Positions 1 through 57,665 of a stretch of 64,000 bases of DNA are shown piece after piece. Both the position numbers and the translations under genes were made by a program. Within the stretch, counting starts at the first letter, position 1. Each line of letters begins with the position of its first letter. The DNA is from Vitrella brassicaformis CCMP3155 (lineage: Eukaryota; Protista; Chromerida), in NCBI GenBank assembly GCA_001179505.1, contig CDMY01000447.1:186001-250000 (forward strand). The letters run 5' to 3'. The notes below the pieces were generated by a model. It was not told the origin of the DNA, made no database searches, and saw only the letters and a program-made list of their open reading frames with translations.

Positions 1-3000
1 GGAGCCCCACCACACTTACCTCGCTGACATGGGCGCCTCGGCAAATGGGCGTCTGTTGGTGGCGGCACTGCTGATCGACAGAGGCGGCACGATGATGGAG
101 CCCCCACCAACGCCAACACCAGGACCAGGACCAGCTCCAGCCACAGCCGCCGCCGCCGCCGAGGTCTGACCGCTCTTCGCAACCCAACCGTTTTTGTTGT
201 CGACACGAACCACGGGAACCTCCTCCCGGCCTGTCTCCACCTTCCCACCTTCCTCCTTCGGACGCACCTCATCCAATCTGCCACCTGTAAGCGAGACAAT
301 GCACAACGGAGTGCGCCAACAAAGTGAAGGTCACGATTTGTCTTCTTCTTACCGAATGGCTGTGGCTGTGGCTGTGCGCGTTTCGCTGCGGGCGGAGCGG
401 GTCCGCGCGCCTTGGGGCGGGTCGTGTTCACCACTCCTGCCCCTCCACGACCAGACAAAGCGAGCGATAGCGGCCGGCCTGATGATGGACAACACAACAC
501 GCCACCACAGCATGACAGCATCACAAAATCCGTGTTGTTTGGTATGTATTCCTCGGTTGTGCTATCCCTCTCGTGTTTGGATTCGTACGCAGCGTGGTGG
601 CCGCCGTGGGACTTGCGACTTTGCTGACAGCCGTACGATTGACCCCTCCCCCAACGCGGCTGCCTGCCGCAACAGACCCGCCCCGCACTCCACCCCCGCC
701 CACTCTCTTGTTGGCTCCCGCACCCGCCAGTGTCACGACAGCATGAGCCGGCTGCCCAGCGGCCCCAGCCACCACATGCTGGTACGGCAAGCCCACAGAC
801 GTGCCGCGATGGTAGGCTACCGAGTGCGGGATACCGTAGCTCGGCTGCTTGGACGACACGACGCGAGACGCACCACCGCCGGCCTTCCTGACGACACCCG
901 GACTTCCCTTGTCTTTGTCCTTATCTTTTGGCGTGGTGGTGCTGGCGCGGGCAGTGGCGGCTCCCGTGTTGATGGGCGACCTGGCCGTCAGGGTCGGCTG
1001 GGTGCCCTTGCTGCGAGTTGATGTGGCCGTGCCGGGGCGAGAGGTGGCAGCAGCTGGCGGGGCGGGCGAAGCGGGGAGAGGGGGTGCGGGCGACGGGCCC
1101 TCCTCCTCCCCTTTCTCGACCAGACGCGGTGTCTCCTCGGCCAAAGGGGGAAGCAGCTCCAAGGCTTCGTCTGTGTCGTTGTTGATCTCACCATTCTCGG
1201 CCGCGGGACAACCCTCGTTGTTGTTGTTATTGTTGTTGTTGGCCACCACCTCCCCCTCAGTGACACCCGTCGAAAGCTGGCGCAGATTTGGCCGCCCGCC
1301 TGGTTCACCACCTGAGCCACCGGCAACTTTAACGACCTTGGAGTCGTCCATCTCAGCCAGATCGCGCAACGCGTCAGTCATCGAGAATTGGGGTGGCGGG
1401 GCGCCCGCGGGCTCCCCAGCTGGCTGCTCTCGTCCGTCTGCGATGTGAGGCGGCCGTGGGATGGAGGGCCCCGGCGAACCCGACAGCTGACAGAGCAGAC
1501 AACGAACAGGTAGACGAAATGAAGATGAAGCCATCAAGTCCTGTATCTCACTTAACTAAGTTTGTCAGTAGATTACGTACGTACCTGTAGAGGCAGTGAG
1601 TACATGTGTGTGACCTTGTCCCCGCCACCTTGCCCCGTCGCCTGCGTGAACACCGGTGGAGGTGTCTGCACGCCCCTCGCCGTGCTTGGGGCGCTGGCGT
1701 ACACGGCCACGTGGGGAGGCACCACAGAGTAGGCCGTCGCCGGCAGGAGGGGCATTCTCGGCGGAACAGAGGCACCAGCATGGAACTGGAAGGTACCAGT
1801 AGCCGCAGGCCGCTTGGGGAAGCAACAGGGCGAGAAGCTCGGCTGCTGCGGCTGCTGCTGATGGTGATGGTGGAGTGCCATTTCTGCGGCGAGTGGACCG
1901 TAGGCCACATACCGCTGGCAAACACAGACACAAACAGCATGACTCACATGTCTCTCTGTGTGAGTTCGTCGCGTGTCTTGACTGCTCACATGTCCTCTGA
2001 TGGGCGGTGTGCGGGGCGAGTCGACGCCCGACGGCGGCTGTGTGTGAATGGCGGGACGGGCAGTGGCCGGCACGGCTTTGGACCTGGGGCTGTTGTTGTT
2101 GTTGTTGGGTGCGCGGGCGTGGATACCTCCGCGGTACGATTGAGCGTAGGACGACGGGATCGCTCCACCCGGAACACCAGCTGAGGGCAGCAAGGGAGGG
2201 AGAGGGGAAAGAAGGGCCGTGCCTGACACTGTGAAGGCCTGGCTGCGGTGCGGTGTGGTGTGGTGTGGCGTACCCTGCATGAGTTTCTGGCGGTAGCTGT
2301 GACGACGCCGATCGAGCAGAAAGAACCTGAGTGAACGGAAAGAACCACACGAACGGTGGCAGAGAATGTCAGCGGCAGTGTCGGTCTTTCGTGTGAGTGT
2401 GAGTGTGACTTACGTTGTGGTGATGCCGTTGTGTTTGTTCTGCTCCAGCTGTGAAACGATGTCCCGCTTGCTCATCTTCCACACACGCACACACTCGTCC
2501 AGGACCTCCTTGTCCAACTGCACCGCATCCGACCAACAGACACACAGAGACAGAGACAGAGACAGACATGTATGTATGCGTGCGCGCACATACAGGCTGT
2601 GCCTTGTCTTGCCTGTATCAATTCGATCTCCCTCCAGTTGCGGCATTGCTCACAGGAAATCACCTGACAGAGGAATGAATGACGGATGAGAGACGACAGA
2701 TGCACTGTCCGCCAGCGTGATACCTCACAGGACGGGAAGTGTCCCCCCTCTGACAACCGCGGCGCCCTCTCGGGGTCCATGATCTCAACCTGGTGATACC
2801 TGCACTCAACCCCCCCCCCCCCCCCCNNNNNNNNNNNNNNNNNNNNNNNNNNNNNNNNNNNNNNNNNNNNNNNNNNNNNNNNNNNNNNNNNNNNNNNNNN
2901 NNNNNNNNNNNNNNNNNNNNNNNNNNNNNNNNNNNNNNNNNNNNNNNNNNNNNNNNNNNNNNNNNNNNNNNNNNNNNNNNNNNNNNNNNNNNNNNNNNNN

Positions 3001-4929
3001 NNNNNNNNNNNNNNNNNNNNNNNNNNNNNNNNNNNNNNNNNNNNNNNNNNNNNNNNNNNNNNNNNNNNNNNNNNNNNNNNNNNNNNNNNNNNNNNNNNNN
3101 NNNNNNNNNNNNNNNNNNNNNNNNNNATACCTGCACTCACCCACCCACCCACCCACACACGCACACACACGTGCCCAAATCACTTGGTGTCGGCCTGCCT
3201 GTCTCTCTGTCTGTCTGTCCGTCGCCTCCCTCCCTCCCTCCCCTCAGTGCCTCACCAAGGGTGCTGACGGATCTGGTCGATTTGGAGACGTTGTTTGGGA
3301 TCCACCATCAGCATGCCGCGGATCAGATCGGCAGCTCCTTCAGAGACCCAACGGGGCAGCTGATCGATCGAAGACACGCAAGCACCAACCATCCTTCCAT
3401 CCAGTGAGTGAAGTGAGCATGTGATGTGACGTCTGCGTGTGTAAGTAGATACCTCGTAGTGGCCATTGAGTATCTTCCCGTAGAGCTTGGCCGTGTCGGG
3501 GTCCTCGAAGGGCAGGTACCCGCATATAAGCGCGTAGAGGATTACCCTGCAATGCATCCCATCCACAACACGGCACAACACGACACAGACGTGTATGGTA
3601 GGTATGCGTTGTGTAATGCATGCAGGCTGCTTGGGCTGGCTTGGCTTGGCTTGGCTGGCTCACCCACAGGACCAGACGTCACACCCAGCGGGCACGTAGT
3701 GATGTCCAGCGATCATCTGCAAGACCACACCACACAACACAACACACGTGAGCGACCAAGAGAGCATTGGGTGAGGAGGAATGCATGTCTGTGTGTGTGT
3801 GTCGTGTCTCACCTCAGGGGCTGCGTAGCATGGCGACCCACACGCCGTCTTGAGCAACTGACCGGCCTGCACTCACACACATGCACAGAGAGACAGAAGA
3901 TGATACCGCGCCCAACCCGGATGTGTGTACATGTGCCGACGGCTGATGCATGGAGGCATGTGTGTATGTTCCCCCTCCCTCCCTCCCTCCCTTACGTGGT
4001 ATGTATTCGATAGTCCGAAATCCACGATCTTGATGTTGCGATATTCATCCAAGAGAAGGTTCTCGGGCTTCAGGTCCCTGACAACCACAAAATAAAAGGG
4101 AGAAGAGGGCGAGACACGCGGTCCCCAGAGGAAACACATCTTCCTCCCTCCCCGTCTGCCATCTACCTGTGTACGACCCCCATCTGATGGATCTTTTCAA
4201 CGCCAGCCAGGATCTGGTGAAAGAACTTACACGCCTCCCTCTCCTTGACCTTGCGCTGCGCCACGATGTAGTCGAAGAGCTCCCCGCCCGACGCATACTC
4301 CATGATCAAAAGCAACTGGTCGTGCGTCTGCAGAATCTGATAGACACACAGAAGAAGACAGCCTTGAGAAATGGATGGATAGCTAGGTGAGTGCGGTACG
4401 GTACCTACCTCGTATAGCTGAATGACGTGAGGGTGTCGGATTCGCTGCAGAATGCTGATTTCACGCTTGACCCTGTTCCAGTCCTCGTCCCCCTGGATCT
4501 TCTCTCTCTCCAATATCTTGATAGCAACTTTTTCGTCTGAACACCAACCAACAAAACACACACACACACACACACGCACATCCAACACACGTGTACCCAT
4601 TCCCCCAGCCCAGCCCACAGTGCCCCGTCTTCTCACTCACTCGTCTTTGTGTGGGTCCCGAGCCTGACTTTGCCGAATGTGCCTTCGCCGATCGTCGCTC
4701 CCAGGACGTAGTCGCCAACCTTCTTGACTTGGTGCTTCTCGCTGGTCGCCCCGGTCGCCGCAGCACTTGCCCCACTTGCCGGGCTGGAGCCGTCGATGTT
4801 GGCACGGTCACATGTCGGGCCGGAAGGGCTGACCGGCGCCGAAGGGTTGCTCACACGCGCTGTCGGCTCAGGCATGTCGGTGATAGGGATGAGCGGCACG
4901 GGGGAGGTGGGAAGCACACGCACGGCCAT
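1..4929 (-). CDS. SNF1/AMPK-like (CAMKL) Ser/Thr kinase, multi-exon, with UBA-like segment and long low-complexity C-terminus; 3' end runs off the window
   Basis: Spliced exons give IGEGTFGKVRLG, EKVAIKIL, HPHVIQLYE, MEYASGGELFDYI, HR/DLKPENLLLD, DFGLSN, TACGSPCYAAPE, DVWSCG, GYLPFED and DPKQRL. ATG at 4929, GT-AG introns. Confidence 0.9.
2827..3126. other. Assembly gap (300 N) inside a kinase intron
   Basis: Exactly 300 N after a poly-C run. ATACCTGCACTCA occurs on both sides (2796-2808 and 3127-3139). Confidence 0.99.
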
Positions 4930-25329: not shown

Positions 25330-27166
25330 CTACCGTCCCCCTCCCCCTCCCCCTCCCCCGCCNNNNNNNNNNNNNNNNNNNNNNNNNNNNNNNNNNNNNN
25401 NNNNNNNNNNNNNNNNNNNNNNNNNNNNNNNNNNNNNNNNNNNNNNNNNNNNNNNNNNNNNNNNNNNNNNNNNNNNNNNNNNNNNNNNNNNNNNNNNNNN
25501 NNNNNNNNNNNNNNNNNNNNNNNNNNNNNNNNNNNNNNNNNNNNNNNNNNNNNNNNNNNNNNNNNNNNNNNNNNNNNNNNNNNNNNNNNNNNNNNNNNNN
25601 NNNNNNNNNNNNNNNNNNNNNNNNNNNNNNNNNNNNNNNNNNNNNNNNNNNNNNNNNNNNNNGCCCCTCCCTCCACCACCTGCACCAACACAACCCACAT
25701 CAGGCGAGTCAAACGCACGATTCATTCAACATCCAACGATCTATGCATGCAAAAGAGCTGCGTTTGGTTGGCCCTTACCTGCTCCGGCCTGGCCCTCCTC
25801 GGGCTGCTGCAGGAGGCTGAGGATCAGCGCAGCACCCAATAACAGCCACCACTGCAGCATCCAACGGAAGGCACAGATGTTTATCAGCCAGCGTCACCGG
25901 GCAGGCAGTGTGCAGTGTCCTCGTGTCTGTCTGTTTGGGTACGTACGTATTTCTGGAAGAAGGACGGCTCCTTCTGCTCCTTGCCGTCCTCCTTGCCACC
26001 CCCTGACACACACAAAGCAGCAGCAGAGCAGTGAGTGGTTCAGACACGGCAGCCGCCGGCTGGACGTGCGGTGCGCTTCGCTGTCACCGAGCACCCTTAA
26101 GTAATCACCTTCGGGTGGTCTTGGAGCCGTCAGTATGTGTGGCCTGACCCAATCACACGCACAGCCACGATATGGACGCATGTGTCGCTCTTTTCAGGTG
26201 TGGTGTGCGTGCTTACGTGTCTGCCTCTGTGGGCGTTTCGACAGCGATCTCAAGCTTCTCCAGCAAATCATACCCGAACTGACCCCACACCCCCACACAC
26301 AGCCATCTCATCTCATCTCACTGAAGCTTTGAGGGGCGTGTGTGTGTGCATATGTTCAATCACCTCCCGTTTGCTCGAGAAGGACATAGCTATGGGCGAC
26401 CCCTTGTCCGTCAGGTGGAGACTCAGCACACCCACACTCCCCTTCAGGTCCAGCCTGTCCTGTAAGCAGGATGTCCGCACGCACACAGACACACACGACA
26501 TCGAGCTTCGGGCCTGTGGCAAGCTTGTGTGTCTTTAATCTACCATCTACCAGAGCAGTGGATGCCATGATGCTCTCGTCCTTGGCGTCATTTGGAGTGA
26601 GGCGAAAGCTCAGCCACAGGCGCCCAGCCTGAAGGACGGACGAACCGCACGATTGATGCCAACACACACAGCAATGGATACCCTAAGGGGAAGGGCAGCA
26701 CGGTGTGTGTGCACTGCTTACGTGTTGAGTCTGCTGTAGGTGTTCGAGTGGGAGTGGCGGGTCAGCGACGGTGGCGCTTCCCTCGAGCACCACTCCTGTC
26801 ACCGGGCTGCGCACCAGCTCCAAATCAGCGTAGTGACGCCACGCACCTGCAGCCAACCACGCCATACACACACAGACGCTACACGTACACTCCCTCCAGC
26901 TGACTGACTCGCTGTGCTGTACCTGAGCTGGAGTCGCCAGGCAAGATGCACTCGAGTTTGTAGGTGTTGTAGGACGACGACACTGCCCTCGTTCTTTCGA
27001 TTCCAAGCAAGCAGCAGAGAGCGGCCGCAGCCAGGGGCAGGAAAGGAGTGCAGCGCCTCACTCGGGATGGGCGGCTTTGGCTTGATCTGTGATGGGTGTG
27101 CAGGGGAAGGGACGATGCTGCTGGTGTGTCCGTGATCTGCGGCGACGTCCGACACTCAGGCGCCAT
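25330..27166 (-). CDS. EMC10: ER membrane protein complex subunit 10-like
   Basis: N-terminal hydrophobic signal (FLPLAAAALCCLLGIERTRA). C-terminal PRPPEG...KEQKEPSFFQKY/WWLLLGAALILSLL followed by a Gly-rich tail matches the EMC10 SFFxKYW-TM-Gly pattern. The tail crosses a gap and the start codon is inferred. Confidence 0.7.
25363..25662. other. Assembly gap (300 N) in the Gly-rich last exon of EMC10
   Basis: 300 N flanked by C-rich runs. Confidence 0.99.
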
Positions 27167-27335
27167 CGTGATGAGTCTTCTCCACCTGCATCGACGCAAG
27201 AGGGCATTTTTTCATTCAATATGGGATCTGTGGCAGCAATGCCTTATCCGTCATCTTACCAGGACGTTGCTGCACTTTCCTGGTTCTCTCCTCAGCTAAG
27301 CGCGCAGACCAAACCCTGGACCTCAAACCCTACGA
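27102..27335. repeat. Repeat copy A: EMC10/HPR divergent promoter plus first EMC10 codons; inverted copy at 34529-34745
   Basis: Direct alignment, e.g. GGGACGATGCTGCTGGTGTGTCCGTGATCTGCGGCGACGTCCGACA and ATGGGATCTGTGGCAGCAATGCCTTATCCGTCATCTTACCA match the reverse complement of copy B apart from substitutions and small indels. Confidence 0.95.
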
Positions 27336-27371
27336 GGGTCATGGCGAGGGTTGCACCAACTCCGTTCCGTG

Positions 27372-29911
27372 ATGCAGGCGTTGAGCGCAGCAGCACGGCA
27401 CTGCCGCTCTCTGCCCCGGCCTCTCCCGCCCCTCCTGCCGTTTGTCCGGCGCCAGTCATCACCGGCGGCAGCTGCCCAATCTGACTTTGACTTTCATCGG
27501 TTCGCCTTTGCTGCGCCCGCATTCGAAGATCTGGCCACCGGCAACCTCTCCGGCTCCCTCAGCAAGGTTAACAATGATTTCCCTGTGTATGAGGCGGGAG
27601 GGGAGAGCGAGGGCCTCTGGCGACGGTATGCGGCTGAGCTGCGGAGGCGGGGCGTGACCAACATCGATGACTACGAGAGGATGGCCGAGGTCTTCGCCAG
27701 AAAGAGATTCCATCAGGTATGGAGTTCGCTGGCCGAATGTCAGTGCAGATGGGTGTCTGTCTGTCTGTCGCTGCGTGGGCCTTGTTTGTTTGTCAGGCGA
27801 CCTTTTGGGATAAGGTGACAGAGTCGTCTCGTCCCCTCTTTGAGGCGGAGCGCACCCACCTCGACCAGCTGCTCAACATCGGTAGACACACACACACACC
27901 AACGTCGTATGCAGGATCGGATCCTGCAAACGTTTGTGTGGATCCTTCGTCTGTGCGGATCGGATCGGTCAGGCGACCCGACTCGTACGCCAAGATCAGC
28001 TGTCGTTCAGACAGCCTGATCCAGCTGCTCATCCGCAGGGGCCGGCAGGACTTCCACGGCCTCCCTACCGACACCGTCACGCGCCTCGTCACCATACTCG
28101 CATCACTCGGCCGCAAACACATTCAGGTGAGATACATGTAGATAGTTAACAGAGGTGAGCACAGATCACATGGCGGGGCGGACAGTCACCCTTTGTGTGT
28201 CTGGTTTGTTGACGCGTCGATCAGTTGATAAATGACGTGGCCGAGTTGGTGATAGAGGAGGCGGTGGCCTTCTCCCCCCGCAGCCTGATCGACCTCCTGC
28301 ACAGCTATGCGGCGCTCGAGTCGCGGGACGACGAGATGCTGCGGCACGCTGCCCGCCGGCTGCACCCCCTGCTGTATGTGGGCAAGCTCACGCCCTTCGA
28401 GAAGACCAAACTCGCACGCACCTACGCGCTGCTCAAGTTCAGCCACTCCACCTTCTTCCGCACCGTGGCTGAGGAAATTCTGGGCGAATACGAACGGCTC
28501 CAGGCCAAGATAGGTACGGATGCAGGCACAGGACGACACACAAAGACTTGATATTTTCATGTGCATGTGTGGCGCTCGCCTCGCCGTGTGCAGGCCTGGG
28601 TCAGGTGGAGCAGCAGGACCTTGCCGTGACGGCCGCCCCGACAGACGCACTCTTCTCCCGCTACTCCCTCCCCAGCTACGAGTACGGCTGTGGGCTGCCG
28701 TCCCTCTATGGCCTGCCCCTGGGCAGCCGCATCCGGAAAAAGGCCGGCAAGGGCGGCGAGGAGGGGCTGGAGGGGTGGCAAGTGGAGATGAACGAGGGGC
28801 GTGAGAAGGAGGTGAATGCGGGGCTGGCTGAGGAGAGGCGGGACCTGCCAGAGGCTGTGGAGGGGCGGGTGGTGGAGTATGACCTCGGGCAGATCGCCAT
28901 CGTCATGGACGCAATTCTCCTGGTCAGTGCATGCCATACAGACGTTTTCTCACGGTGAACCCGTCTCTCGTCACGTGTGGGTCCGTGTGCAGCTTCGGTT
29001 TCACGAGTGGGCTGACTACTACCGTGAACTGCGGACGGTGCTGGCCAAGCGGCTGCATGAGCCACAGGCAGTGGAGCAGCTCGACCCCCTGCAGCTCGCC
29101 GCTGCCATGAACTTCCTCTCCACCAATCGGCTCGTCGCTGAGAACGAGGACCTCGTCACGGCCATGACCAGACGGTCAGCCAGCAACCACTTCCGCCCCA
29201 CACAACCATGCAGCCATTTCCCCCCGTTGTGTGTATTCTCCCTCTTTCGTGTGCAGCATGTTTCGCCTGTTCCACGCCGACCTGGCCAAGCCGTTCCACC
29301 TGGTGTTTTACCACAAGGGTCTGGTGAGTTGGCGGCAGACCCCCGCCCGCGCCAAAAATGCCCGTGGCCGCACTCTGCGGTTCTTCGTGTTGCGCAAGCT
29401 GCCGTGGCTGGAGGCCAAGGAAGAGGGAGAGCGCTTCAGTGTGCTCGAGAGGCTGGGGGAACACATCTGCCAACGCGTCCACTAGTAAGGATTGCTGGCA
29501 CGGCACATCACGCCCCGTCCACAGAGAATGTATACAACGTAACGTGGTGGTGTGGTGTTGGTGCGCATGGTCATAGTTTCACGTTGGGCGAGTTGTCGTC
29601 TGTGTTGCGGTCGCTGGCCTACCTCGACTTTGGCGACGCTGACTTCTATCGTGTCTTTGTGCCCTTCATCAAGGTACACTGTGACGCCTGTCGGATGTGA
29701 CGTCGCGTGTGTGAGTGCGTGTGTATATGGGTCTGTGTAGGAGCGTGTGGGCGACTTGGCGTGTGTGGATGTGTCCAACGTCATGCAGGCCTTCAATCGG
29801 CAGCGGCTGGAGGACAGGCATCTGTTCTATCTCCTGGGCAAGCAGTGGCAGGCCAAAGAGGCAGACTTCGTGAGCGTCAAATGGCGCGGCAAGGTCATTC
29901 AGGGACAGTAG
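27372..29911 (+). CDS. Mitochondrion-targeted helical-repeat protein (HPR/OPR/RAP-like, probably RNA-binding)
   Basis: Amphipathic R-rich leader MQALSAAARHCRSLPR. Degenerate helical repeats (FSPRSLIDLLHSYAAL; LTPFEKTKLARTYALL; FTLGELSSVLRSLAYL; LACVDVSNVMQAFNR). Confidence 0.65.
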
Positions 29912-30405
29912 ATACGGACAGACAGACGGCGGGGAGGCGTGTGTGGTGAGACTTTTGTGCCCATTACGCATGATTGTAACCGAACAACTTTATCGATTGT
30001 AACGGGACAACAGAGACACAGAGACGTCTGAATATAGAATGCAGGCAACGATGTTGCAGCTGCTGCAAATGCACACACTCTGGCACCCACTCTCTTGTAC
30101 CGCTGCGCTGCACACTTCATCCCCTTCCTCCTCCCTTCGACACCCGGACCTCACATAGACAGTCAGTCATCCAGTCAGTATACACCCTGCACACCTGACC
30201 GCAGCGAAGCGCCGTCCACCACTAGCAACTTACGAGTAGCAGAGTCGGCACCAGAACAAATGCACACATCATGAACAGAGAGACAGAGAGACACAGACAG
30301 AGACACAGACAGAGACACAATACATCCATCTCCTTGTGCCAACCAACCATTCGAATATAAAATGCAGGCAACGATCGACGTTACATGTGGTGTACACACA
30401 CACTT

Positions 30406-30517
30406 TCTGTTGCGTCTGCCCGTCCTTCACCGTTGGGTTGAGGTCCACCGTCTCTTTTTGAGGGTGTGCTGGTATGAGCCCAGCTTCCCGGGCTTCCGGG
30501 CTTCCAGGGGTGCACGC
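30406..30517. repeat. Diverged ~110-bp direct duplicate of about 31379-31485
   Basis: Both copies share CTGTTGCGTCTGCCC, TGGGTTGAGGTCCACCGTCT and TGAGGGTGTGCTGGT. Confidence 0.85.
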
Positions 30518-30523
30518 TTACTG

Positions 30524-31200
30524 TCAATCCAGTCCATCCAAAGCCATCAGCGGGCAAAGAGCCCAGCAGGCCAATCGGTGAGTGCCCTGCTTACTGTCAA
30601 TCCAGTCCATTTGGTGGGCCGTAACTCCCTCGACGCGTTCGCCGTTGGGCGTCGTGTACGGCAGCGGGATGTGGTAGACGGCCTGGCACTTGATGATGGT
30701 CGACGGCGGCAGGGGCCCCTCATTGGGCCGCTCGTAGCGCTTCCGGCATTCGTCCATCCCAGCCGTCAACCTGGTTGACATTCAGATCGGTGGGTGCGGT
30801 GACACACAGGCAGTGCAGTGCGTGTGGCATCCATCTCTCTCTGTCTGTGGGGGTGGGTGCGTACCAGTTGTGCATTGGCGTCCCGTTCGTCGTGCGACAG
30901 CAGCTTGACAGCCCACAGCCGGCCCTCAGAGTCCCTCATCGGCACCACCGTCCCGAAGCGGCCATGACGCAGCGGCACCGAGTACTCGACAGAGAAACCT
31001 GACTGCATCAGCCAGCCCTGGTGTCCATCAGAGAGAGACAATTAAGGCCCGTTGATTGATTGATTGATTGCCTTCCGTCCGTCGTCTGTGCGTGGGTATG
31101 TATGTACCATTGCCAGGGCAGTGTGCTTGGTTTGGTCGTCCAGCTGCTCGTACAACTCCCTTTGGCGCTGCTCCCAGGCATCGTCCCTAACACCCACTGC
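30524..31200 (-). pseudogene. Truncated protein-kinase N-lobe fragment
   Basis: HGRFGTVVPMRDSEGRLWAVKLL resembles subdomains I-II. The next exon ends in locally duplicated sequence and no HRD/DFG was found. Confidence 0.45.
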
Positions 31201-31892
31201 AGGCAGGCCACACAAGCCAAGACAACCCACACGAGGCAATGAGGGAAACGAAGAATGAGTTGGGCTAGGCCCCTTTCTCTTTGCTCAGTCTGCCGTTCGC
31301 TCGCCATAATATTGATCAGAAACGCAGAAACGTCACGACAAACAATTACCGGAGCCGGTGCAGGTAGTGGATGGTGCACTGTTGCGTCTGCCCACCGTCC
31401 ACCCGTGGGTTGAGGTCCACCGTCTTCGTGAGGGTGTGCTGGTCTTGGCCCAACAACCGGGGCTGCCGGGGGTGCATGGAAGGGGTGCTGCCGACGCTGA
31501 TGGTCTCGCCAGAGGTGCTCCTGACCTCTACGTTGAAACAAAACGCCCTGTATGGACACCACCAAAGATGGAGACAAGGCATGTGTATGTGGGCTGCATC
31601 TGGGTGCGCATCTTTCTTGTCTGTCTCGTTTCGACCACTCACTCGCTGCACGCAAAGATCATGATGAACTCCTTGCGGTCGCTAAACACGGCCTCGCCCT
31701 CCTCGCTGCTCTGCAGCCAGCAAGTCAAGCAGTGGATGGGATGACGCGTTGATGTGTTGTTTTTAGGTGGGTCGGGTCTATCTTCTTGGCTCCACTGCTT
31801 GCGGTATTTGTAGATAGTGGGCTTGCCGTCGTCGGACAATATCGCGCCGAATGTCTCGTCGTCGGTGTTGTCCAGGACGATGTTGTTGACGG

Positions 31893-33110
31893 CTATCTGG
31901 AACTCGCCGCACGTCCCGGCCAACCCTCCATCTGCGCTCTTGTGGCTTTTGTGCCGCAAAGTGTGGGGACATCAAGGAAATTTGCGCGGCACCGACGCCA
32001 CTCGTCATATACCCGCATGGCTGCCAGGTGGTCACTACGTAGGTCGGGACCTGCGTTTAGAGGAAGAAAACGATGCATCTAGAGAACACACATGCAGGCG
32101 TGATGCGTTGTCTCTACCACAAAGATTGGCTCGCGCAGCATCGCCTCTGCCTCTCTGTCGAGTGGCGCTTTGAAAAGACTCTCGACTGACAGCGCCGCGG
32201 CGATGGTGAGGGCCTGTCATGATATACATTCATTTGTACCGTAGCTCGTTGACAATGGATCTTATCCCTTCGCTGACCTGATTGGGGATGCCCAGCACAG
32301 CCAATCAGAAGCAGCTTCCCGCTGGTCAAGTCGATAGGCAGCCTGATAGGTGAGCACCAAGGGCTGCTGAAGGGCTGTGTACATGCAAGATATGCGTGCT
32401 GCATATTGTTGTGTCTCTGCGTCTCCTGCTGACCTGAATGGCCGAAATCTCCGTGAGATAGCGGAGCGATGCGCCGATGCGGTGTGGGTGAGGTGGATCG
32501 ATCATATCGTTGAAGAATGAATAGGGCTCGCCACTAAGCTCATTCTTGTTCATTTCAGCGTATGTAAAGGCAGACCTGTCAGTGACTGCGAGGATGTGTA
32601 AGGCAACCTCATCGAGTGACTCCCTTTCAATGGCCGGCACACTCGGATAGTAGATAGCCGCCAGCACGTACCTGGAGCGACCCGCCCTTTTCGTCCCTTT
32701 CTTTGACTGATCCGAAATTGGAAACAACCGATTTGCATGTGTGCGTCTCTGCTTCCGCTCACTTCCGCTCGCGATATAGTCATTGTCGTTAGTTCCTGGA
32801 CCGCTCTTCGGGGTCCTCGTTGTGCTTGGCGTCGTGTCGCTTACAAATGTGTACCAGCCGCTTGACTTGAGTCTCCAGCTTCCTGCACAACAGCTCGGTT
32901 GTGTACTATTTGTATCCTTACCCGGGTGTTGTTGTCGGAGAACATTGTTTTGTGCATCATCGTATCGACTACATGCCTGACAACAACCCTTATGACTCAT
33001 CCCTCTTTCTGTATTCATCTTCATGTTCTGTCGTTCATCCAATCGTTCTCACCGAACGTCGTCAATCGTAATCGAGTTGAGTGATGTTCGTGCTGAGTAC
33101 GATCTTCCTC
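31893..33110 (-). pseudogene. Decayed DEAH-box RNA helicase C-terminal half (motifs V-VI, HA2, OB-associated region)
   Basis: RKIVLSTNI-(frameshift)-NSITIDDVR; KRAGRS; ESLDEVALHIL...IDPPHPHRIGASLRYLTEISAI; LPIDLTSGKLLLIG; SDHLAAMRVYDEW...NFL. There is a frameshift in motif V and motifs I-III are missing. Confidence 0.75.
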
Positions 33111-33751
33111 GCACCTGAATCAAGGAACAATATACGTTATACATCTGCCTCTCTCTCTCTCTCGTGTACCCTCTGGCTGTATACTGCAATGCGCCATCTG
33201 ATATCTTGCGGCCTTCGCCTCTGCTGGCGATGACGCCAGCAGGGGGATGGACGGGGCGTTCTTCGAATTCCCTGGCTCCTCCAGCTCACCAAGGGAGCGG
33301 GAGCTCTCCTCGGCTGCCTTGTCTGCCTCGCTCGTCCACCCGCCCTCCTCTTGTCTGTCGCCTGCGTCCGTTGCCGCCTCAGCGTCGTCCGCCACCAGGT
33401 GGGTGGGGGGAGGGAGCGGGATGCAGCACTGGGTGGCTGCTTGGGTGAATGTGGCGGCCGACTTTCTCGGTGGCGTGGGCGACGAGCGATACAGAGGCAG
33501 CCCGAGGCGGGTCGGTGCTGGCGATACAATAATTACGCAATAATAAATTAGGCTTTGTGAGAGGTCCGTCTCGCAGTCTCGCCAAATCTCGAGGCGCATG
33601 GAAAGGCGAAGGCCATCAAGAGAAGACCGGCACGGTGGAAAGTGATGGTGCCTCCTGATGCGGCCCTTGTCTACAAAACCGTGCACGTGGAAAACCGTGC
33701 ACGCACGTGGAGAGGCGAATTCTGATCAATTGATTCTGATCTGGGCGACTG

Positions 33752-34340
33752 CAGTAAGTATCGCTTAAAGCAATCACCGTATAAACCAATCATTTCCATA
33801 AAGCAATCACCCCGTCACGGGGGGGAAACTGTCATTAACCGTAACACTCGTCTGTGTGTCCGTGATACTCATACAAATACAGTCCCATCAGCACGCAGAG
33901 TCAAACAGGCTCAAGGGGAGGAGGGATCAATCCCCGCCCCATCAGCACACCCCAGTCCCGCAAACCCTCCCCTCCCTCCCCCACGCAGACAGAAGCTAGT
34001 CGCACGCGCGAGGGCGATAGACAAGCGAGAGCGAATCCATCCAGACACATGACTGAACCCCCGACCCTTCCACCCCTCCTTCTCCAACAGCGCATGAGCC
34101 ATGTGGGCGATGAACACGTTGGCATCGTGTCCCAACACACCGTCACACGTCACCACCAGAGGGCAGAAGGTCACGCGGGAGTCGCAGACGGCCGAGCGGT
34201 ATTTCTTCTTCTTGGCGGTCTCGTGCTGCTTCAGGATGGACTTGGTCGATCGGTTCTTGGAAGCGTAAGACGTTGCGTCAGGATCCGTAATACAGATGTC
34301 AAATCACCCCGTCACTGATTGCTTTATGCGATACTTACTG
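33752..34340. mobile_element. MITE-like TIR element (92 bp once the insert is removed), Tc1/mariner-style CAGT termini
   Basis: 25-bp TIRs at 33752-33776 (CAGTAAGTATCGCTTAAAGCAATCA) and 34316-34340 match at 24/25. TAAAGCAATCACC is repeated internally. Flanks are TG (left) and TA (right). Confidence 0.8.
33819..34301 (-). mobile_element. 5'-truncated non-LTR retrotransposon (RLE-endonuclease, CRE-like), 483 bp, with 14-bp TSD
   Basis: Encodes FDICITDPDATSY...KKKKY...FCPLVVTCDGVLGHDA...WIRSRLSIALARATSFCLRG, stop at 33911. Identical AATCACCCCGTCAC at 33805-33818 and 34302-34315. Confidence 0.88.
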
Positions 34341-34528
34341 TATACCGATTTAATGGCGTGTAGCGGTGGCTTTCCTCTGTTTGTGGATTGGATTGGATCA
34401 TGATGGATGGATGGATACGGACATCCTATCTATCCTCACAGCTAGACGCACACGCATTCATTCAATATGAACCAACCAACCGTCTGGTCAATCAAAGCTA
34501 TCGACTCGTGTACTGGTGGCGATGCCAA

Positions 34529-34745
34529 TCGTAGGGTTTGAGGTCCAGGGTTTGATCTGCGCGCCGAGGAGGGAGAATCAACAAAGTGCAGTGGTAAGAT
34601 GACGGATAAGGCATTGCTGCCACAGATCCCACATTGAAATGGCCCTTTTGCGTCGATGCAGGTGGAGAAGACTCATCACGATGGCCCCTGACTGTCGGAC
34701 GTCGCCGCAGATCACGGACACACCAGCAGCATCGTCCCTTCCCCT
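34529..34745. repeat. Repeat copy B: inverted duplicate of 27102-27335, upstream of the aquaporin
   Basis: See copy A. Retains ATG at 34681, giving a 27-codon uORF MAPDCRTSPQITDTPAASSLPLARHAA* (34681-34764). Confidence 0.95.
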
Positions 34746-34879
34746 TGCGCGTCACGCAGCTTGATGGATTGAAACGAGCACTCGAGAAGAAAAAACAAAA
34801 CAGCGAGGAGGAAAGGTACGCGGAGCGGAAAGGCACACAGACAAAAACGATTCACCATCCCCATCTGAAGGATGTCGTC

Positions 34880-36195
34880 ATGGCAGCAGATCCGCCCGCT
34901 GCTTCTGAATTGAAGATGGCGTCATCTGATTTCACATCTCGTGCCAGTTCGCTGGCAGGCGAAGCACTCGGCGTGGCCTTGCTGCTCTCCATTGGTGAGG
35001 GATTCGGCGCCATAGCGACGCTGCTGCCCGGCAACTACGCGATCTGGCAGGTGGGTGCGTGTGTGTGGGCGTGGAATGGATGGAGTGCACCGAGGCACTT
35101 GTATCGTCGGGTGTGCCATTGCAGGTGGCCATTGCGTGGGGCGTGGGGCTGGTGTTAGCCATCCATGTGGCCAGCAAACTCAGCAACGCCCACCTCAACC
35201 CCGCCGTCAGCATCGCTCTGCACCTGGATGGCTCCAACAAGATGACAGTATGCACACGTCAGACAGGCAGGCAGGCATCGTCTCTGTGGTCTGCCATGGT
35301 ACATGTATATGATTGTCGCTTGTTGGTGCAGGCGACGGATATGGCGCTATACCTGTGCGGCCAGTTCATCGGCGCTTTTGCCGCTGCAGCGCTCGTCTAC
35401 GGCTGCTTCAGAAGCCACATCGAGTCACTGCAACGCGACGGCACCACTTTGTCAATGCTCACGGGGGCCTCCATCTTTGCCTGCTACTTCCCGCCACCAG
35501 GCAACACGTGAGCACGTCTGCTCTCCCTTGGACAGACAATCCATTCATCCAGCCAGCGACAGGGGTGTGTGGCCTGGCCTTTTGTGTGTGTGTGTGTGTG
35601 TGTGCTTAAGGTATGTTGACCCCTACGAAGCGGTGACACCCCAGCGAGCCTTTTTTCTGGAGTTCCTCGCTACTGCATCTCTTCTGGTCGTCATCAAAGC
35701 CATGGCTCATGAACCAGCCAACGATCCACAGCGAGAACAATTGGGGCTGCTGAGTAGACCTGCTCCCAAGCCCAGCGTGTGGCTTCCGTCGTCTGTGCTG
35801 GGGGTGACGCTAGCCATCTTGATAGTGTTGATAGCGCCGATGACGCAGTGCTGCTTGAACCCCTGCAGAGACCTCGCACCACGAGTGCTGCTGTGGCTAT
35901 GTGGTGAGTGAGGAGGGCACTGTGGGTGGGGGGTGCCTGCTTCAGATAGCTAGCTGGTGGCGTGACAATCTGTGTCCTCTTGTCTGCCTTTATCCATGCA
36001 GGCTATGGCCAAATAGCGTTCCCGGGTCCCCGCAAGATAGAATTGTGGCTCTACATGGTGGCGCCGACCGCAGGCGCCATTGCAGGAGCGTTTGGGTACA
36101 ATTTGGTGGTCCGGCTGAAGGAGCAGCAGAGACTCAAGAGCAAAGAGGAGAGCGAGCCGGGCTCGCCCAGAGTCGCGAGGGCCTCCGCCCTTTAG
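34880..36195 (+). CDS. Aquaglyceroporin (MIP family, GlpF-like)
   Basis: Six TM segments. First motif AHLNPAVS; second motif LNPCRDLAPR with the GlpF-type Asp after Arg. GASIFACYF and LWLYMVAPTAGAIAG also present. Confidence 0.93.
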
Positions 36196-36559
36196 TTGCG
36201 TCTCAGTGAGTTGGTCTGGAAGCGAAGTGCGCAGGAAGGTGCGGCGCGTGGCTTGGGTGTGCTTTATGAGGGCCTTGTGTGTGAGACTGTATGTGTGTTG
36301 GGATGCCTGGGGCCTTGGGACTTTCTGGAAGCATTGGCTTGTGGCGTGCAGACGAGAGTGTGGTGTCTCTGATAGATATCGATTTGTTGTGTGGCGGGGC
36401 CGGCTGTTCGTTCGTTCAGTGTGGCTGGCTGTTTGTTTGTTTGTTTGTCGACAGGGACATTATGACATTTGTGGATCACATCGTGTGGTGTCGTGTTGAT
36501 AGATCATATAACGCTCATGTCACTCATTGACCACTTCTATCCAAGTCGGCCCTCACTAC

Positions 36560-39500
36560 TCAGCCGCCTGTGGTCTTGAGAATGAAGCACCCCACAGGGC
36601 AGCTGAAGGTGGCCTTGGCCCGCTCCAGGTCGCAGTCGAGCGACGTCGTCCATCGCAACGGCTGCAGCCCATCTGGCCTCCCTCCCTGCGCATGATGGGC
36701 GGTGGGCGTCTTGTCCTCCTCGTGCTGCAGGTTCGTCAGCTCCTTCTTGCCCGCCATCATGCTCAGATACCTGCCAGACAGATCCAATCCCGGCAAACAC
36801 GGTGGGTGCTGTGGGTGGTGTGGGGGGTCGTGTCATTTCATGTACCTGGCGGCGTCTCCCGTGCCAGTGAGGATGACGATCAAGGAGTTGGCCGGCGCCG
36901 CATCGTAGAGGCGCCTCACGTGCCCCTCGATGGCTCGAAGGCACGACTGACGGGCGTCGGATGGCAGCGGGGGAAACAGGGCGCGGGAATCACGCTGAAT
37001 CGCCTCCAGATCTATGTCAACACACACAGCAGAGCAGCGATGCCTCTGCGCTGTTGTCATCTTGCTCATCCGGCCATGTGTGTACCGATGTCATTGCTGC
37101 GCGGGCTGCCGTCGCCCTGCCCGTCGTCCATGGCACCCTCCCTCTCCCTCTCCCTGTTCTTGTCCTTGTCCTTGTGCAGCGGCTCGAGCCCATCCCTCAC
37201 CCTCTGGTACACGTGCACCACCCGCTTGACGCGATGGTTGAAGGTGTAGAGCTTGCCCGTGTCCATCCCAACATTGGCCGAACACAGCCGCTGGTAGTCA
37301 CGCAACACGCACACCGACACACGGGGCACACAACCGGCCGCCGCGCTGGCACCGAGTGCGTGTGCTTGTGGGGGTGAGCGTTTGCCAGAGCCGTTCTTCT
37401 TGCAGGGGGGTGTGAGTTCCATGGCGCTGGGCAGGTCGGGGGGAGAGGGGGAGTGTGTGTGGGTGGCGGACGAGAGGCGGCGCTGCAGGGCCTCCATGTG
37501 GTTGACCGTCTCGGCGTCAGATTCCGTTTGGATGGCCTTCACACCCTGCACACATCCAGACAGACAGATAACACACAGGATATCACACGACATGATGCAG
37601 TGAGTGTCTCCTCTGTCTCGTCTCACTCTCCCTGGCCTGATAGATCTTACCTGGAACATGGGTCCGATCAGCGTGTGCTTCATCCTGTGTGGGACCGAGT
37701 CGCACAGCACCACCCGATCCGTCGGCTCAAACGCCACACCTCCCACACCAACCTCACCACCCAACACGCATCCCCCGCCACCACCATTGCCCATCGTCGA
37801 CCGCCCTTCATGATCCTCTTTTGCAATCGTCAACGACTGCAGAGTGTTGGCTGCCCCCGAGAGGGGGCCGGCCTGTGAGGAAGTTGATGCGCATGCGCAT
37901 GGGGCGGGCACCGTGGATGAGAAGGGCACTGGGGCGTTGGGTGCCAGGGAGCCGCCGAAGCCGGGGCCGTTTTCCAGCTTGAGGATGGCCAGCCGGAGGG
38001 CGGCCTTGGCGTCCTCGACTGAGTCGTGTCCGTCTTTCCTATCGAGACCCTCCTTGTGAAGATACGTCTTGACCTGCATGAACCCATGCAGCACTCAGCC
38101 AGACAGACACACAGACGAGGTGGGGGAGGTGTTGTGTTGTGTTGTATGGTGGAAGGGCTGCGTACGAGGTATTGCAGAGATGACTTGTTTGGCGGCCTGG
38201 GGTGGGGGTAGAGGAGGGCCGTGTCCAACACACGGGTGTGCACCAGACGGAGATACCTATGTGTGTGTCGTGTACGACAGCAGAAGGATCCACCATCAGG
38301 CCGTGTCTCTATCTTTGTGCGGCGGCTCACGTGAGATCGTTTTCCATTGAGTGTCCGACGAGTATGGCGTCATGGGGCAGGGCGCGACGCATCTCCTCGT
38401 GCACGTCAGACAGACCCGTTGTCACATCTACCAAAATGACGATAGATACACAAACCAAACAATCGACAAGTGGGTAACCCATCCCTTCTCCCTCCCTCCT
38501 TTTCCTTGCGTCCCTCTGCTCACCTTTGAGGGTCTCCTCAGAGATGCCGCTGTATCTGGTGAGGTAGTCTGTGACCTTGCCCGCTGGCCTGACAAACGTG
38601 TCCACCACCGTCTCCCACCGCACATTGACGATCGACACCCGCGTGATCTCCATCCCATTCTCCGTCTCACACATCTCGCAGTCAAGACCGAACAGCTTCG
38701 CGTGGTCAGGATCGTCCTCTATGCGGTCCAGCAGCTGGGTGGGCTCGGCGTCTGCAGCAGAGGCCTGCTGCTGCTCGCCGTCCAGCACGATAAAGCCACT
38801 TGGAGGGTTGCGTGACGTCGGGGGATCTGCAGAGGTGAGAAAAGCGTCTGGTGCATTGATTGGCAGTGGCTGGTGCGTTGCGTACCGAATGCGGGATAGC
38901 CATTGGCGCGGAGGTCATCGGGGGAGGGGAAGTAATGGCGCACCGGGGGCACCCGACGGGGAGGGGCCGACTTGTCCTGTTTGTTTCTCATCTGCGGCGG
39001 CCGACGACTGTCCTCTGGCTTGACAGCGTGATACGTCAACAGGCGCTGACAGGGCACGGACACACAGACACGATATGACCAAGAGTGGGCTGGCTAAATC
39101 GGTGTCACACGTTCATCCCCCCTCCACACGCATCGCATCGCACCGACCTCCACAAAGGAGCACCCGGCATTCCTGTCGACTGGCTCGTAGCGCCTGCAAC
39201 ACAAACAAAACAGAAACCACCAAACATCCAACGAACAAGCCAAGCCCCGTCTATCTCTCTCTCTCGTGGTCTGGTCTGCTGCATCCATCCAGCCATACAT
39301 GGTGCATGCGGTTGGCTCGCCCCTGTTGACGGTCTTGAGCAGCTCCCTGAAGGCCTCTCTGAAGGTCAGCTGGTCCAGGTAGGGCACCATGACGACCAGC
39401 GCCTGGCTGACATCCACTGGGGAGAGGTCTATCCAGTCGCTGCCGTAGCCGTCCTTCTCCCGGTCCTTCATCGCCTGACGCATTTCGGGCGGCAGGAACG

Positions 39501-39845
39501 CCCTGCAGGAAGAACAAAGAGTCAAGAGGACGGGTGCAGGAGACCCGACAGGATGGGTGCATTGAGTTTGGCTGTATGCTATGGCTGACTGACCATCTGA
39601 TGAGGTTCTGCACGTCAGCCATGTCAGGCTTCATCTCGCCAAAGAACGGACCTCTTCCTCCCGGGTTGGTGCGGCGGAGATTCAGCTGCATGACATACAC
39701 ACAATGCATTGCATTGCACAGACACCACACAGGATGAAATGGGAGCGGTGATTGAGGTGCATCTGTTAGCACATGGATCTGTCCGCCTCACCACGACCGC
39801 GGGATTTTCCCGTTCTTGCGCGGATCTCTTCTTGTTCTTGCCCAT
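36560..39845 (-). CDS. DEDDh 3'-5' RNA exonuclease, REX1/REXO1-REXO5-like
   Basis: FGLDCEMCET...TRVSIV, TDYLTRYSGI, ILVGHSMENDL, VLDTALLYPHP, SSLQYLV, GHDSVEDAKAALRLAILKLENGPGFG. Confidence 0.92.
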
Positions 39846-55400: not shown

Positions 55401-57665
55401 CCCAGCATGCACGTGTACCTCTACAGGTGAGGTGGGCTTCCTCACCCCCCCCCCCCCCNNNNNNNNNNNNNNNNNNNNNNNNNNNNNNNNNNNNNNNNNN
55501 NNNNNNNNNNNNNNNNNNNNNNNNNNNNNNNNNNNNNNNNNNNNNNNNNNNNNNNNNNNNNNNNNNNNNNNNNNNNNNNNNNNNNNNNNNNNNNNNNNNN
55601 NNNNNNNNNNNNNNNNNNNNNNNNNNNNNNNNNNNNNNNNNNNNNNNNNNNNNNNNNNNNNNNNNNNNNNNNNNNNNNNNNNNNNNNNNNNNNNNNNNNN
55701 NNNNNNNNNNNNNNNNNNNNNNNNNNNNNNNNNNNNNNNNNNNNNNNNNNNNNNNNNNCCCCCCCCCCCCCCCCTTCCTCAGTGAGTGCATTGGTTCATG
55801 TCCTGTATGGTCATGTGTCTGTCCCAGCGAGGGCTACATCCGCACGGCGAGTGAGCCCCTGCGGCTTGACGGAGATGGATACGGTAGACCAACACAGTAG
55901 ACTTGACGTCCGCTTCCCTCTGCATGTTTCCATTGATTGACGCAGTGGACCCCTTCATCCACATCACCAACAACGCTGTGCAGAAGCTGGGGGCCGCATA
56001 CGGTCAGTCAGCCAGCCAGCCAGCCAGCCAAGAAGATAGTTGTCTATCGAGCCAGAACACCGTGGATACATGTGTGTGTGCAGGCAAGCATGAGGCCGGC
56101 AACCAGATGTCGTTTCAGGAGCTGCAGGAGTACTGTGCGGAGCACTACCCTCATCTGCAGCTGGACTTCAGCCCGCAGGGTGGCGTCCTCAGACGAGTGT
56201 CAGAGCTGGTCGCTCTCTCAATGCAAGCCGTGAGCTTTAAAGAGGGGCGGCCGGCCTCGAAAGGGGCAGTAGCACATGTCTCCTGTTTTGCGCGCGTGTG
56301 TGTGTGTGTGTGTGTTGGGCAGATTCGTCAGTCCCTGAATCGCCGCATGAGGCGATGCTCATTCCAGCTGTTCGGGTCAATCTTTCATTCGACTCTGCCA
56401 GCAGCTAGCGTGGTTGCCTTGTGTGATCTCATTCTGTCTGTGCTGCAGTTATGACTTCATGATTGATGAAGGCGGGCACACGTGGCTCATCGAGGTCAGT
56501 GAGTGGAGCAAATGAAACAAAAGAAGGAAGACACGTGACCAGTGCATGTGTGCGGACGTGCAGGTCAACAGCAATCCGTGTCTGGAGGAGTCCTCGCCGC
56601 TGCTGCGTCGGTTGCTGCCCGAGATGCTGCACGACCTGTTCAAGCTCGTGGTGGACCCCTACTTCAAACCCATCCGTTCCACACATTGGAACATATACAG
56701 AAAATTCCAAGTGAGAAAGGGCACTCACGCTGTCTTTGCTATTTAAGAGTGTGTGTTGTCTGTGTCAGGTTGAGGAGCGTGCGTCTCGTTTCGAATTGGT
56801 GACGTGTCTCAACACGCCCCGGTCTGTGTTCCTCCCCGGTGGGGAGCTGCCTAAGTGGGGAGTGGGGCTACCCAGAGGTAGATCCGTCACACACGCATGC
56901 GTACATTGACAGACATGTCTCCTGCTTTTCTCACGCAGGCAAAGGCCAGCGCCTGCTCGCAAGGTAAGGGAGCCAACTGCCTGCCTCTCATCCTGTGGAC
57001 GTGGCTCTTCGTTTGTGTGTGGTTTGCTTCGGTTGACCAGTGCGTCTCGAACGCTGCTGGGCATCACTCAGCGCGCCGGCGCAGGTGGCGGTATGGGACC
57101 GATTTCCTTCCACCCCACACCATGGCGAATCATCAAAGGCACCCACACATGCACATACAATGAATCGTTCCTCCCTTCATTGTGTATCCTCTCTTGCGCA
57201 GGCACGAAGCCTCCCAGAGTCGACCATCAGTGTCCCTGGTGCTCGCCAATCCGGCTGCTCAAACACACCCCCGAGCTGCCTGAAGAGGGTGGACCTGCCC
57301 CTCGTCCCAACCCCTCTCTGTCGCCCCTGCCTCTCTCCCCGCCGGATGACCTCACCATGCCCCCGTGGCTGGCCAAACAGGCCAAGGACGATGTGCAGGG
57401 AGAAAGGGGGGCGAGCAACGGCAATGGTGGTGTTGCCGAGGCCGCCAAGGCCCCTTACGACAAGAACGACAAGGCGAGGAAACGAGCTGCTGTGAACAAT
57501 GGCAGGAGAAGACGAGATGAGAATGGCAAGCAGGAGGGGAAGAGAGAAAGTGGTGGTAGTGGTATCGCTATTCATCCCAGCTGGTCGCGGCCCAGCAGCA
57601 GCGGCCAGAGCCAGGGGCGGGCATCAAGACAGAGCATTCACAACGTCTCCGTCATCAAGCCGTAA
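52413..57665 (+). CDS. Tubulin-tyrosine ligase family protein (TTLL, possibly glycylase TTLL3-type); start may instead be 52533
   Basis: GNNHKLV, VNHFEYGYEIAVKGRL, WILKPSGLSRGRGIQLF, QKYIERSLLIRERKFDVRMW, EGYIRTASE, IHITNNAVQK, FQLFG/YDFMID...WLIE/VNSNPCL. Confidence 0.92.
55459..55758. other. Assembly gap (300 N) in a TTLL intron
   Basis: 300 N flanked on both sides by poly-C. Confidence 0.99.

Follow-up and report, generated by a model that had tools for sequence, protein, structure and literature searches.

An inverted duplicate of an EMC10-like 5' end as probable core promoter and leader of an aquaporin gene in Vitrella brassicaformis

Genes and repeats at the locus

The locus lies on contig CDMY01000447.1 of Vitrella brassicaformis CCMP3155. 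Positions refer to the window, i.e. the whole 64-kb stretch of DNA that was analysed, and 186000 has to be added to obtain the coordinate of the public record. The following features were found between the EMC10-like gene and the far side of the aquaporin gene, the two arms of an inverted repeat being called arm A and arm B.

25741-27166, minus strand: EMC10-like gene, public gene call (P0121, CEM13726.1, 268 aa)
27102-27345, minus strand (EMC10 sense): arm A, its inner end secure to 27335, with weaker similarity to ~27345
27311-27331, plus strand: two AAACCCT motifs of arm A, telomere-unit-like (starts 27311 and 27325, 14 bp apart)
27345-33750, plus strand: block S, a segmental duplicate of ~6.4 kb, collinear with contig positions ~107403-116529 (L010 9969-19095)
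27372-29911, plus strand: HPR/RAP-domain gene, public gene call (P0123, CEM13728.1, 634 aa), the first gene in block S
30720-32505, minus strand: gene of unknown function, 285 aa, public gene call
33752-34340, no strand: TIR element, 589 bp, with 25-nt terminal inverted repeats CAGTAAGTATCGC.TAAAGCAATCA (24/25 match)
34341-34518, no strand: unique sequence, 178 bp, between the TIR element and arm B
34519-34745, plus strand: arm B, the inverted copy, in aquaporin polarity (212/226 aligned bases equal to arm A, 4 indels)
34533-34553, minus strand: the two AAACCCT counterparts of arm B (starts 34533 and 34547), lying 12-32 bp ahead of the 5' end of the aquaporin mRNA
34916-36195, plus strand: aquaporin coding region (P0001, 306 aa, five coding exons, Pfam MIP)
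36560-39845, minus strand: RNase_T-domain gene, public gene call

The identity of the aquaporin is clear. Joined from five GT-AG exons, its protein is 100% identical to the 'Aquaporin' P0001 of Vitrella brassicaformis CCMP3155, it scores 106 bits against PF00230 (MIP; cut-off 25), and its first box reads NPA, the second NPC. The EMC10-like protein carries the UniRef name ER membrane protein complex subunit 10, while its match to Pfam PF21203 (E 4e-4) falls slightly under the curated cut-off. Paralog-guided reconstruction of the HPR gene gave models of 597-648 aa and never the annotated 634 aa. In the databases searched with both proteins, EMC10 and HPR were represented by genome-annotation proteins only and by no transcript-derived protein. 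Both genes stand head-to-head, their ATGs at 27166 (minus strand) and 27372 (plus strand) being separated by 205 bp and thus by less than the 1 kb expected of a bidirectional promoter. The Vitrella genome is very compact, with a median gene spacing of 92 bp and head-to-head pairs over-represented (PMC4501334). Consequently, the divergent spacing of EMC10 and HPR is ordinary and a core promoter of ~50 bp is plausible.

The first-pass annotation had reported that the segment 27102-27335 recurs in inverted orientation at 34529-34745, and BLASTN confirmed this (27102-27335 against 34745-34529, 234 columns, 87.6% identity, E 1e-80), with no further match to the arms elsewhere in the 64-kb window. 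A repeat search resolved the similarity into three collinear inverted blocks, namely 27102-27210/34637-34745 (95%), 27215-27261/34592-34638 (98%) and 27300-27345/34519-34564 (89%). In a global alignment, the arms share 212 matches, with 14 mismatches and 19 gap columns in 4 indels, which corresponds to a substitution divergence of 6.2%; the longest run identical between them comprises 53 nt (34693-34745). The 86.5 kb examined of the 72.7-Mb genome hold two copies, 7.2 kb apart. As had also been claimed, arm A covers most of the interval between EMC10 and HPR plus about 22 EMC10 codons: by the public gene coordinates it contains the EMC10 ATG (27166-27164), 65 nt of EMC10 coding sequence (~22 codons) and nearly the whole 205-bp ATG-to-ATG interval, within which lie the presumed EMC10 5' leader, including a conserved GT..AG intron, and the two AAACCCT motifs.

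Divergence is unevenly distributed along the arms. The outer 149 bp, which correspond to intron 1 and exon 2 of the aquaporin mRNA described below, differ by 2.7%, the inner 77 bp by 13% (Fisher p = 0.006), and the introns of block S, too, exceed the outer part in divergence (p = 0.007). Any of three causes could explain this gap: a constrained leader, gene conversion, or a promoter end that changes faster.

Beyond their ends, the arms share nothing recognizable: neither the aquaporin leader compared with EMC10 exon 1 nor the region left of 34519 compared with the HPR start gave similarity above shuffled controls. Inverted or direct internal repeats of at least 10 nt were found in neither arm, nor were TIRs. 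A target-site duplication around the arms is absent, and their flanks differ (…GGGTGTGC beside arm A, TTGCGCGT beside arm B). Lacking TIRs, internal repeats and target-site duplication, the arm was rejected as a transposable element. It was likewise rejected as an RNA gene or SINE, there being no Rfam family and no tRNA. A 20-mer common to both arms gave two chance matches of 20-23 nt, in soil metagenomes, when compared with the collection metagenome_contigs, which is without Vitrella.

The arms flank a 7.2-kb composite insert that consists of block S, the TIR element and the 178-bp unique stretch. The counterpart of block S lies inverted on the same contig, 97 kb away. Window positions 27362-33749 and L010 9991-19095 align in collinear blocks at 82-96% identity, as in a segmental duplication, and the HPR paralogs of both loci, P0123 and P0122 (624 aa, at the distant locus), fall into one 90% cluster. 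Between the block copies, HPR exons have diverged by 2.4%, introns by 9.0% and other non-coding DNA by 2.6-8.1%, which is comparable with the 6.2% of the arms. The left breakpoint of block S (27345-27362) abuts the inner end of arm A (27335-27345), a coincidence within 0-25 bp; a local alignment sharing CGAGGGTT moves this edge to 27345, an extension that taken alone is weakly supported. The right edge, 33750, is 2 bp before the TIR element. The latter is single-copy in the 86.5 kb examined, and neither it nor the 178-bp stretch has relatives in the window or in L010. Decayed retroelement and helicase remnants had been proposed for the DNA between the arms; the open reading frames there gave no Pfam match at E 0.01 or better.

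The aquaporin mRNA, its leader and its uORF

Four independent spliced assemblies of aquaporin transcripts were available (contigs L002-L005), two from JGI MMETSP and two from Logan RNA-seq runs. Together with the genomic sequence they define the following structure.

34565-34593, plus strand: 5'-UTR exon 1, inside arm B (L002)
34594-34661, plus strand: 5'-UTR intron 1, 68 nt, GTAAGA...TGCAG, entirely within arm B
34662-34815, plus strand: 5'-UTR exon 2, first 84 nt arm-derived, last 70 nt unique (L002-L005)
34681-34764, plus strand: uORF of 27 codons (MAPDCRTSPQITDTPAASSLPLARHAA) plus stop, its ATG homologous to the EMC10 start codon, present on L002
34816-34889, plus strand: 5'-UTR intron 2, GT..AG, 74 nt, containing the in-frame ATG 34880
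from 34890, plus strand: exon 3, with the start codon 34916 used by mRNA and annotation

Each of the four contigs crosses the junction between arm and unique sequence (34745/34746) with 100% identity to arm B and extends upstream of 34745. Thus a transcription start downstream of that position, one of the outcomes which the first-pass annotation had set against its own proposal of promoter capture, is contradicted by 4/4 assemblies. The furthest 5' end, 34565 in L002, lies inside arm B and is the end of a de novo assembly rather than a cap site; none of the four contigs passes upstream of it. L002 is also the sole contig to reach exon 1 and the uORF, and it carries bases specific to arm B, with 2 mismatches to arm A over 85 nt. 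One detail of the first-pass annotation has to be corrected: the aquaporin ATG was placed at 34880, ~135 bp after the arm, and this codon is spliced out within intron 2, the start codon being 34916.

Upstream of the mapped 5' end, arm B comprises only ~46 bp (34519-34564), compared with ~180 bp that are transcribed as exon, intron and exon. The captured unit would therefore amount to a core promoter together with a 5' leader. The idea of promoter capture stands insofar as the aquaporin mRNA runs through arm B and has its 5'-most end there, and it needs amendment in that the captured unit includes the leader. Because arm A preserves both splice sites of intron 1, donor as well as acceptor, the EMC10 leader very likely has the same intron-containing structure.

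The remaining contig ends can be explained differently. Both Logan contigs, L003 and L004, have their first base at 34716, which is exactly 30 nt within the 53-nt run identical in both arms. We rejected this position as a downstream start site, since 30 nt equals k-1 and is the break expected of a k=31 assembly graph. The start of L005 at 34725 was rejected as a genuine start site as well, being probably another assembly break. A k=31 graph branches at such a point if RNA from both arms is present, and the break is consequently an indirect sign of RNA bearing arm A, and hence of expression of the EMC10 exon, in two RNA-seq runs.

The former EMC10 start codon was said to open a 27-codon uORF at 34681-34764, and this uORF is indeed found on the assembled mRNA. 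Its start context, ACGATGG with A(-3)/G(+4), is that of the EMC10 ATG. On L002 the upstream ATG occupies mRNA position 49 of a leader that measures 209 nt, and the reading frame ends 19 nt beyond arm B and 77 nt before the main AUG, its stop overlapping a 2-codon mini-uORF (TGATG). Given the strong start context and the 77-nt distance, the uORF would be expected to lower translation of the aquaporin and to make it dependent on reinitiation.

Retention of both AAACCCT motifs in the copy, also claimed at first pass, was verified, each arm containing two. In the window as a whole the motif was found 8 times where 4.4 are expected, with 4/8 occurrences inside the arms. Among 21 genes scanned, only EMC10, HPR and the HPR paralog carry it less than 300 bp from the ATG, the paralog having a similar pair, AGGGTTT/AACCCTA, 21-30 bp upstream of its ATG. 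The pair of arm B lies 363-383 bp before the aquaporin ATG and thus outside the 300-bp scan. As a general promoter motif AAACCCT was rejected, being neither enriched in the window nor found upstream of the 18 other genes.

Origin and direction of the copy

With a probability of roughly 0.6, we take arm B to be a nearby inverted duplicate of the EMC10-like 5' end, one that now supplies the aquaporin gene with core promoter, leader and uORF; insertion of the block between the arms is probably linked to it. By this reading, the EMC10-like 5' end would have been copied locally and in inverted orientation ahead of a resident aquaporin gene. The copied unit would have comprised ~46 bp of DNA before the start site, exon 1, the 68-nt intron and the first 84 nt of exon 2, the last with the EMC10 start codon and the ~21 codons that follow it, and arm B would now act as core promoter and start site of the aquaporin gene.

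The true start of aquaporin transcription could lie upstream of 34519 and thus outside the copy. Promoter and start site would then be found further upstream, in the 178-bp stretch or in the TIR element, and the copy would account for 5'-UTR sequence, one intron and the uORF, yet not for the promoter. We consider this rather unlikely, while it is the alternative that survives best. It draws on the nature of the L002 end at 34565, an assembly end and not a mapped cap site, on the mere ~46 bp of arm B upstream of it, and on the AAACCCT motif, which, missing as it is ahead of 18 other genes, is no general promoter motif here. However, no contig reaches beyond 34565, where the differences specific to each arm would not interrupt an assembly. 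Furthermore, the very short intergenic spacers of Vitrella imply compact promoters (PMC4501334), and the counterpart in arm A must contain the EMC10 promoter, because the homologous position is only ~73 bp from the HPR ATG.

The direction of copying has to be considered as well, since the sequence gives no direct polarity of the event. On grounds of parsimony we favour arm A as source and arm B as copy. Between the arm end at 27102 and a hydrophobic, signal-peptide-like segment, EMC10 offers no other in-frame ATG; arm A is thus needed by EMC10, while the corresponding frame of arm B merely runs into a stop. In the reverse case, arm B would be the native aquaporin leader, and its copy would have given EMC10 its promoter, its leader and the N-terminal 22 codons. 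The unusually long stretch of ~39 residues that precedes the hydrophobic segment of EMC10, whose N-terminus reads MAPECRTSPQ..., looks graft-like and would suit this direction. However, it requires a stop-free in-frame fusion of a UTR-derived reading frame to EMC10, and an EMC10 gene without the arm would find no alternative in-frame ATG downstream of 27102 before the hydrophobic segment. We therefore judge the reverse direction to be improbable.

Even less credit is given to a third reading, in which the ~240-bp unit is a dispersed and possibly mobile promoter-bearing repeat that EMC10 and aquaporin acquired independently. The TIR element and the retroelement-like remnants close by might point this way. 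However, only two copies exist in 86.5 kb, 7.2 kb apart, and they are without TIRs, target-site duplication and internal repeats. In addition, the unit holds the start codon and a spliced intron of a host gene, and transposable elements make up only ~2% of the Vitrella genome (1.5/72.7 Mb; PMC4501334). That the arms at present mediate recombinational flips of the 7.2-kb segment, leading to an inversion polymorphism, is very improbable, since it has only the geometry of an inverted pair on one chromosome in its favour, whereas the arms, short at ~230-245 bp, differ by 6%, are interrupted by 4 indels and are identical over at most 53 nt, and the assembly and all transcripts present a single orientation.

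Returning to the local copy of the EMC10-like 5' end, the source was originally named as a bidirectional promoter of EMC10 and HPR. The divergent ATGs 205 bp apart agree with such an arrangement, while the breakpoint of block S abutting arm A speaks against it as the ancestral state. HPR stands beside the EMC10 promoter because of the segmental duplication, the block having been copied either to or from the locus 97 kb away, so that either copy may be the parent. The pairing of EMC10 and HPR may thus be no older than the duplication of the arms. Should pairing and copy be of one age, an 'EMC10/HPR bidirectional promoter' may never have been the source of arm B.

Arm duplication and insertion of block S were probably linked, as their breakpoints coincide (a rough estimate of the chance of this is 0.03-0.05) and their divergence is similar. 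Two potential scenarios could be envisioned: either a closely spaced inverted repeat was broken at its centre and repaired by ectopic copying, or a single multi-step template-switching or foldback event took place, possibly triggered at the end of the TIR element. One might speculate, and this is a tentative idea, that one complex rearrangement rewired three genes, with a break at the centre of a young inverted duplication of the EMC10 promoter or at the end of the TIR element into which the 6.4-kb HPR block was copied. If so, HPR would have been set against the back of the EMC10 promoter as a new head-to-head pair, the aquaporin gene would have gained the inverted copy as promoter and leader with a ready-made uORF, and the locus would represent a natural example of how repair of a break centred on an inverted repeat makes new pairings of promoters and genes in a compact protist genome.

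Comparison with known systems

It is a known route of evolution for one gene to adopt the promoter and the untranslated 5' exons of another. The Vitrella case is a new instance of it in an unusual structural setting and reveals no new kind of mechanism. Mammalian retrogenes and domesticated genes reportedly rely on promoters in their vicinity, which are often bidirectional, and acquire introns in the 5' UTR, as Fablet et al. are said to have described in PLoS Genet in 2009. The aquaporin gene resembles them in that its transcript start, its untranslated 5' exons and a 5'-UTR intron would come from the promoter region of another gene. In contrast to such retrogenes, the promoter region was here copied in inverted orientation before a resident multi-exon gene, and the coding start of the donor was carried along and became a uORF. 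Another point of comparison is the chimeric young gene Sdic of Drosophila, where duplicated coding sequence became promoter or leader. Similarly, EMC10 codons 1-22 now form part of the non-coding 5' leader of the aquaporin, whereas neither a new gene nor a chimeric protein arose and only 244 bp are involved.

What the locus offers is a clean and, with ~6% divergence, datable case in which the 5' end of a gene was replaced by a copy of its neighbour's. The move took along, as one piece, promoter-proximal sequence, an exon of the 5' UTR, an intron whose splice sites work, and the start codon that now opens the uORF. The setting is the very compact alveolate genome of a relative of apicomplexan parasites, poor in transposable elements. 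Two predictions follow: the EMC10-like gene and the aquaporin gene should be under shared transcriptional control, and translation of the aquaporin should be limited by the uORF. Moreover, the coinciding breakpoints suggest a way in which head-to-head gene pairs may come about, an arrangement that is over-represented in chromerids.

Regarding the rearrangement itself, fragility of inverted repeats and palindromes as well as foldback-primed inverted duplication at double-strand breaks have been described (PMC3855049, PMC7999016, PMC10622511). In line with these processes, the Vitrella arms flank an insertion whose breakpoint meets the inner end of an arm, a placement expected from a hairpin or cruciform cut at its centre or from foldback or template-switch repair. 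However, the Vitrella arms are short, their spacer measures 7.2 kb, and the mechanism is deduced from the breakpoints alone, where microhomology beyond ~3 bp could not be demonstrated.

Two further resemblances concern the leader. Translational control by uORFs is familiar from reinitiation of the GCN4/ATF4 type, and the aquaporin mRNA shares with these systems a short uORF in strong start context that ends 77 nt before the main AUG. It differs in that there is one meaningful uORF, accidental in origin and with a putative regulatory role. The AAACCCT motifs, on the other hand, recall the plant telo-box promoter element, AAACCCTA. While the motif is here not enriched near gene starts, and any function in chromerids is putative, the same sequence is found near the aquaporin transcript start and upstream of the ATG of the HPR paralog as well.

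Block S and the motifs at the HPR starts

The HPR/RAP gene of the window (27372-29911, + strand) is the first gene of a segmental duplication of about 6.4 kb, which carries this gene together with an adjoining unknown gene. Window positions 27345-33750 match positions 9969-19095 of L010, a stretch of the same contig (CDMY01000447.1, about 107403-116529), and the two copies lie 97 kb apart in opposite orientation. Their divergence ranges from 2.4% in exons to 9% in introns, and the distant copy contains 3.8 kb of extra sequence with a 219-aa gene. Within the window copy we also observed a tandem duplication of about 970 bp (30407-30509 and 31379-31479; 75-87% over the pieces detected), which overlaps the unknown 285-aa gene. 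In the distant copy, in contrast, this unit is single.

At the HPR paralog, AGGGTTT and AACCCTA are found 21-30 bp upstream of the ATG (L010 9969-9990), and the window counterparts of these bases are degenerate (AGGGTTG, CCAAC-TCC). The window HPR has two perfect AAACCCT motifs 47-61 bp upstream of its ATG, which lie in arm A, the inverted-repeat arm at the EMC10-like start. AACCCTA occurs at three sites in 86.5 kb, namely in arm A, in its partner arm B at the 5' end of the aquaporin gene, and at L010 9969-9990.

A TIR element next to the breakpoint

Only 2 bp past the breakpoint of the segmental duplicate, an element with terminal inverted repeats (TIRs) begins:

33752-34340: TIR element, 589 bp, with 25-nt terminal inverted repeats CAGTAAGTATCGC and TAAAGCAATCA
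33911-34174, - strand: 87-aa ORF enclosed by the element

The element also carries 14-nt subterminal direct repeats (AATCACCCCGTCAC). No clear target-site duplication was found at it. Its ORF gave no Pfam match; our impression, and only that, is that it is retroelement-like.

Aquaporin leader, protein and 3' neighbour

Inside the second 5'-UTR intron of the aquaporin (34816-34889), an ATG at 34880-34882 shares the frame of the aquaporin ORF. Retention of this intron, if it occurred, would add 12 N-terminal residues (MAADPPAASELK), and the intronic ATG may be left over from an earlier start or 5' end. Further upstream, the start of a 2-codon mini-uORF overlaps the stop of the 27-codon uORF (34762-34772; TGATGGATTGA). 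Stop-start overlaps of this kind are associated with reinitiation.

In the aquaporin (34916-36195) the first box reads NPA and the second NPC. Its closest database relatives, itself aside, are GlpF-type glycerol facilitators of bacterial or metagenomic origin (30-38% identity). In four assemblies, single transcript contigs (L002-L005) join it, across 36195-36773, to a convergent RNase_T-domain gene, the two stops being 365 bp apart. Since both genes were assembled into single contigs, their 3' ends overlap or abut. In the RNase_T-gene exons (37086-37555, 36843-37019) all four assemblies depart slightly from the genome and do so identically, at 99.4-99.6% identity; one of the shared differences alters the length by 1 nt. 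This suggests an assembly error or strain polymorphism.

Runs of N

Three runs of exactly 300 N are present in the window:

2827-3126: 300 N
25363-25662: 300 N
55459-55758: 300 N

The public record, compared at the second run only, is N there as well, and this run is therefore a scaffold gap. It lies beyond the EMC10 stop codon, separated from it by 79 bp.
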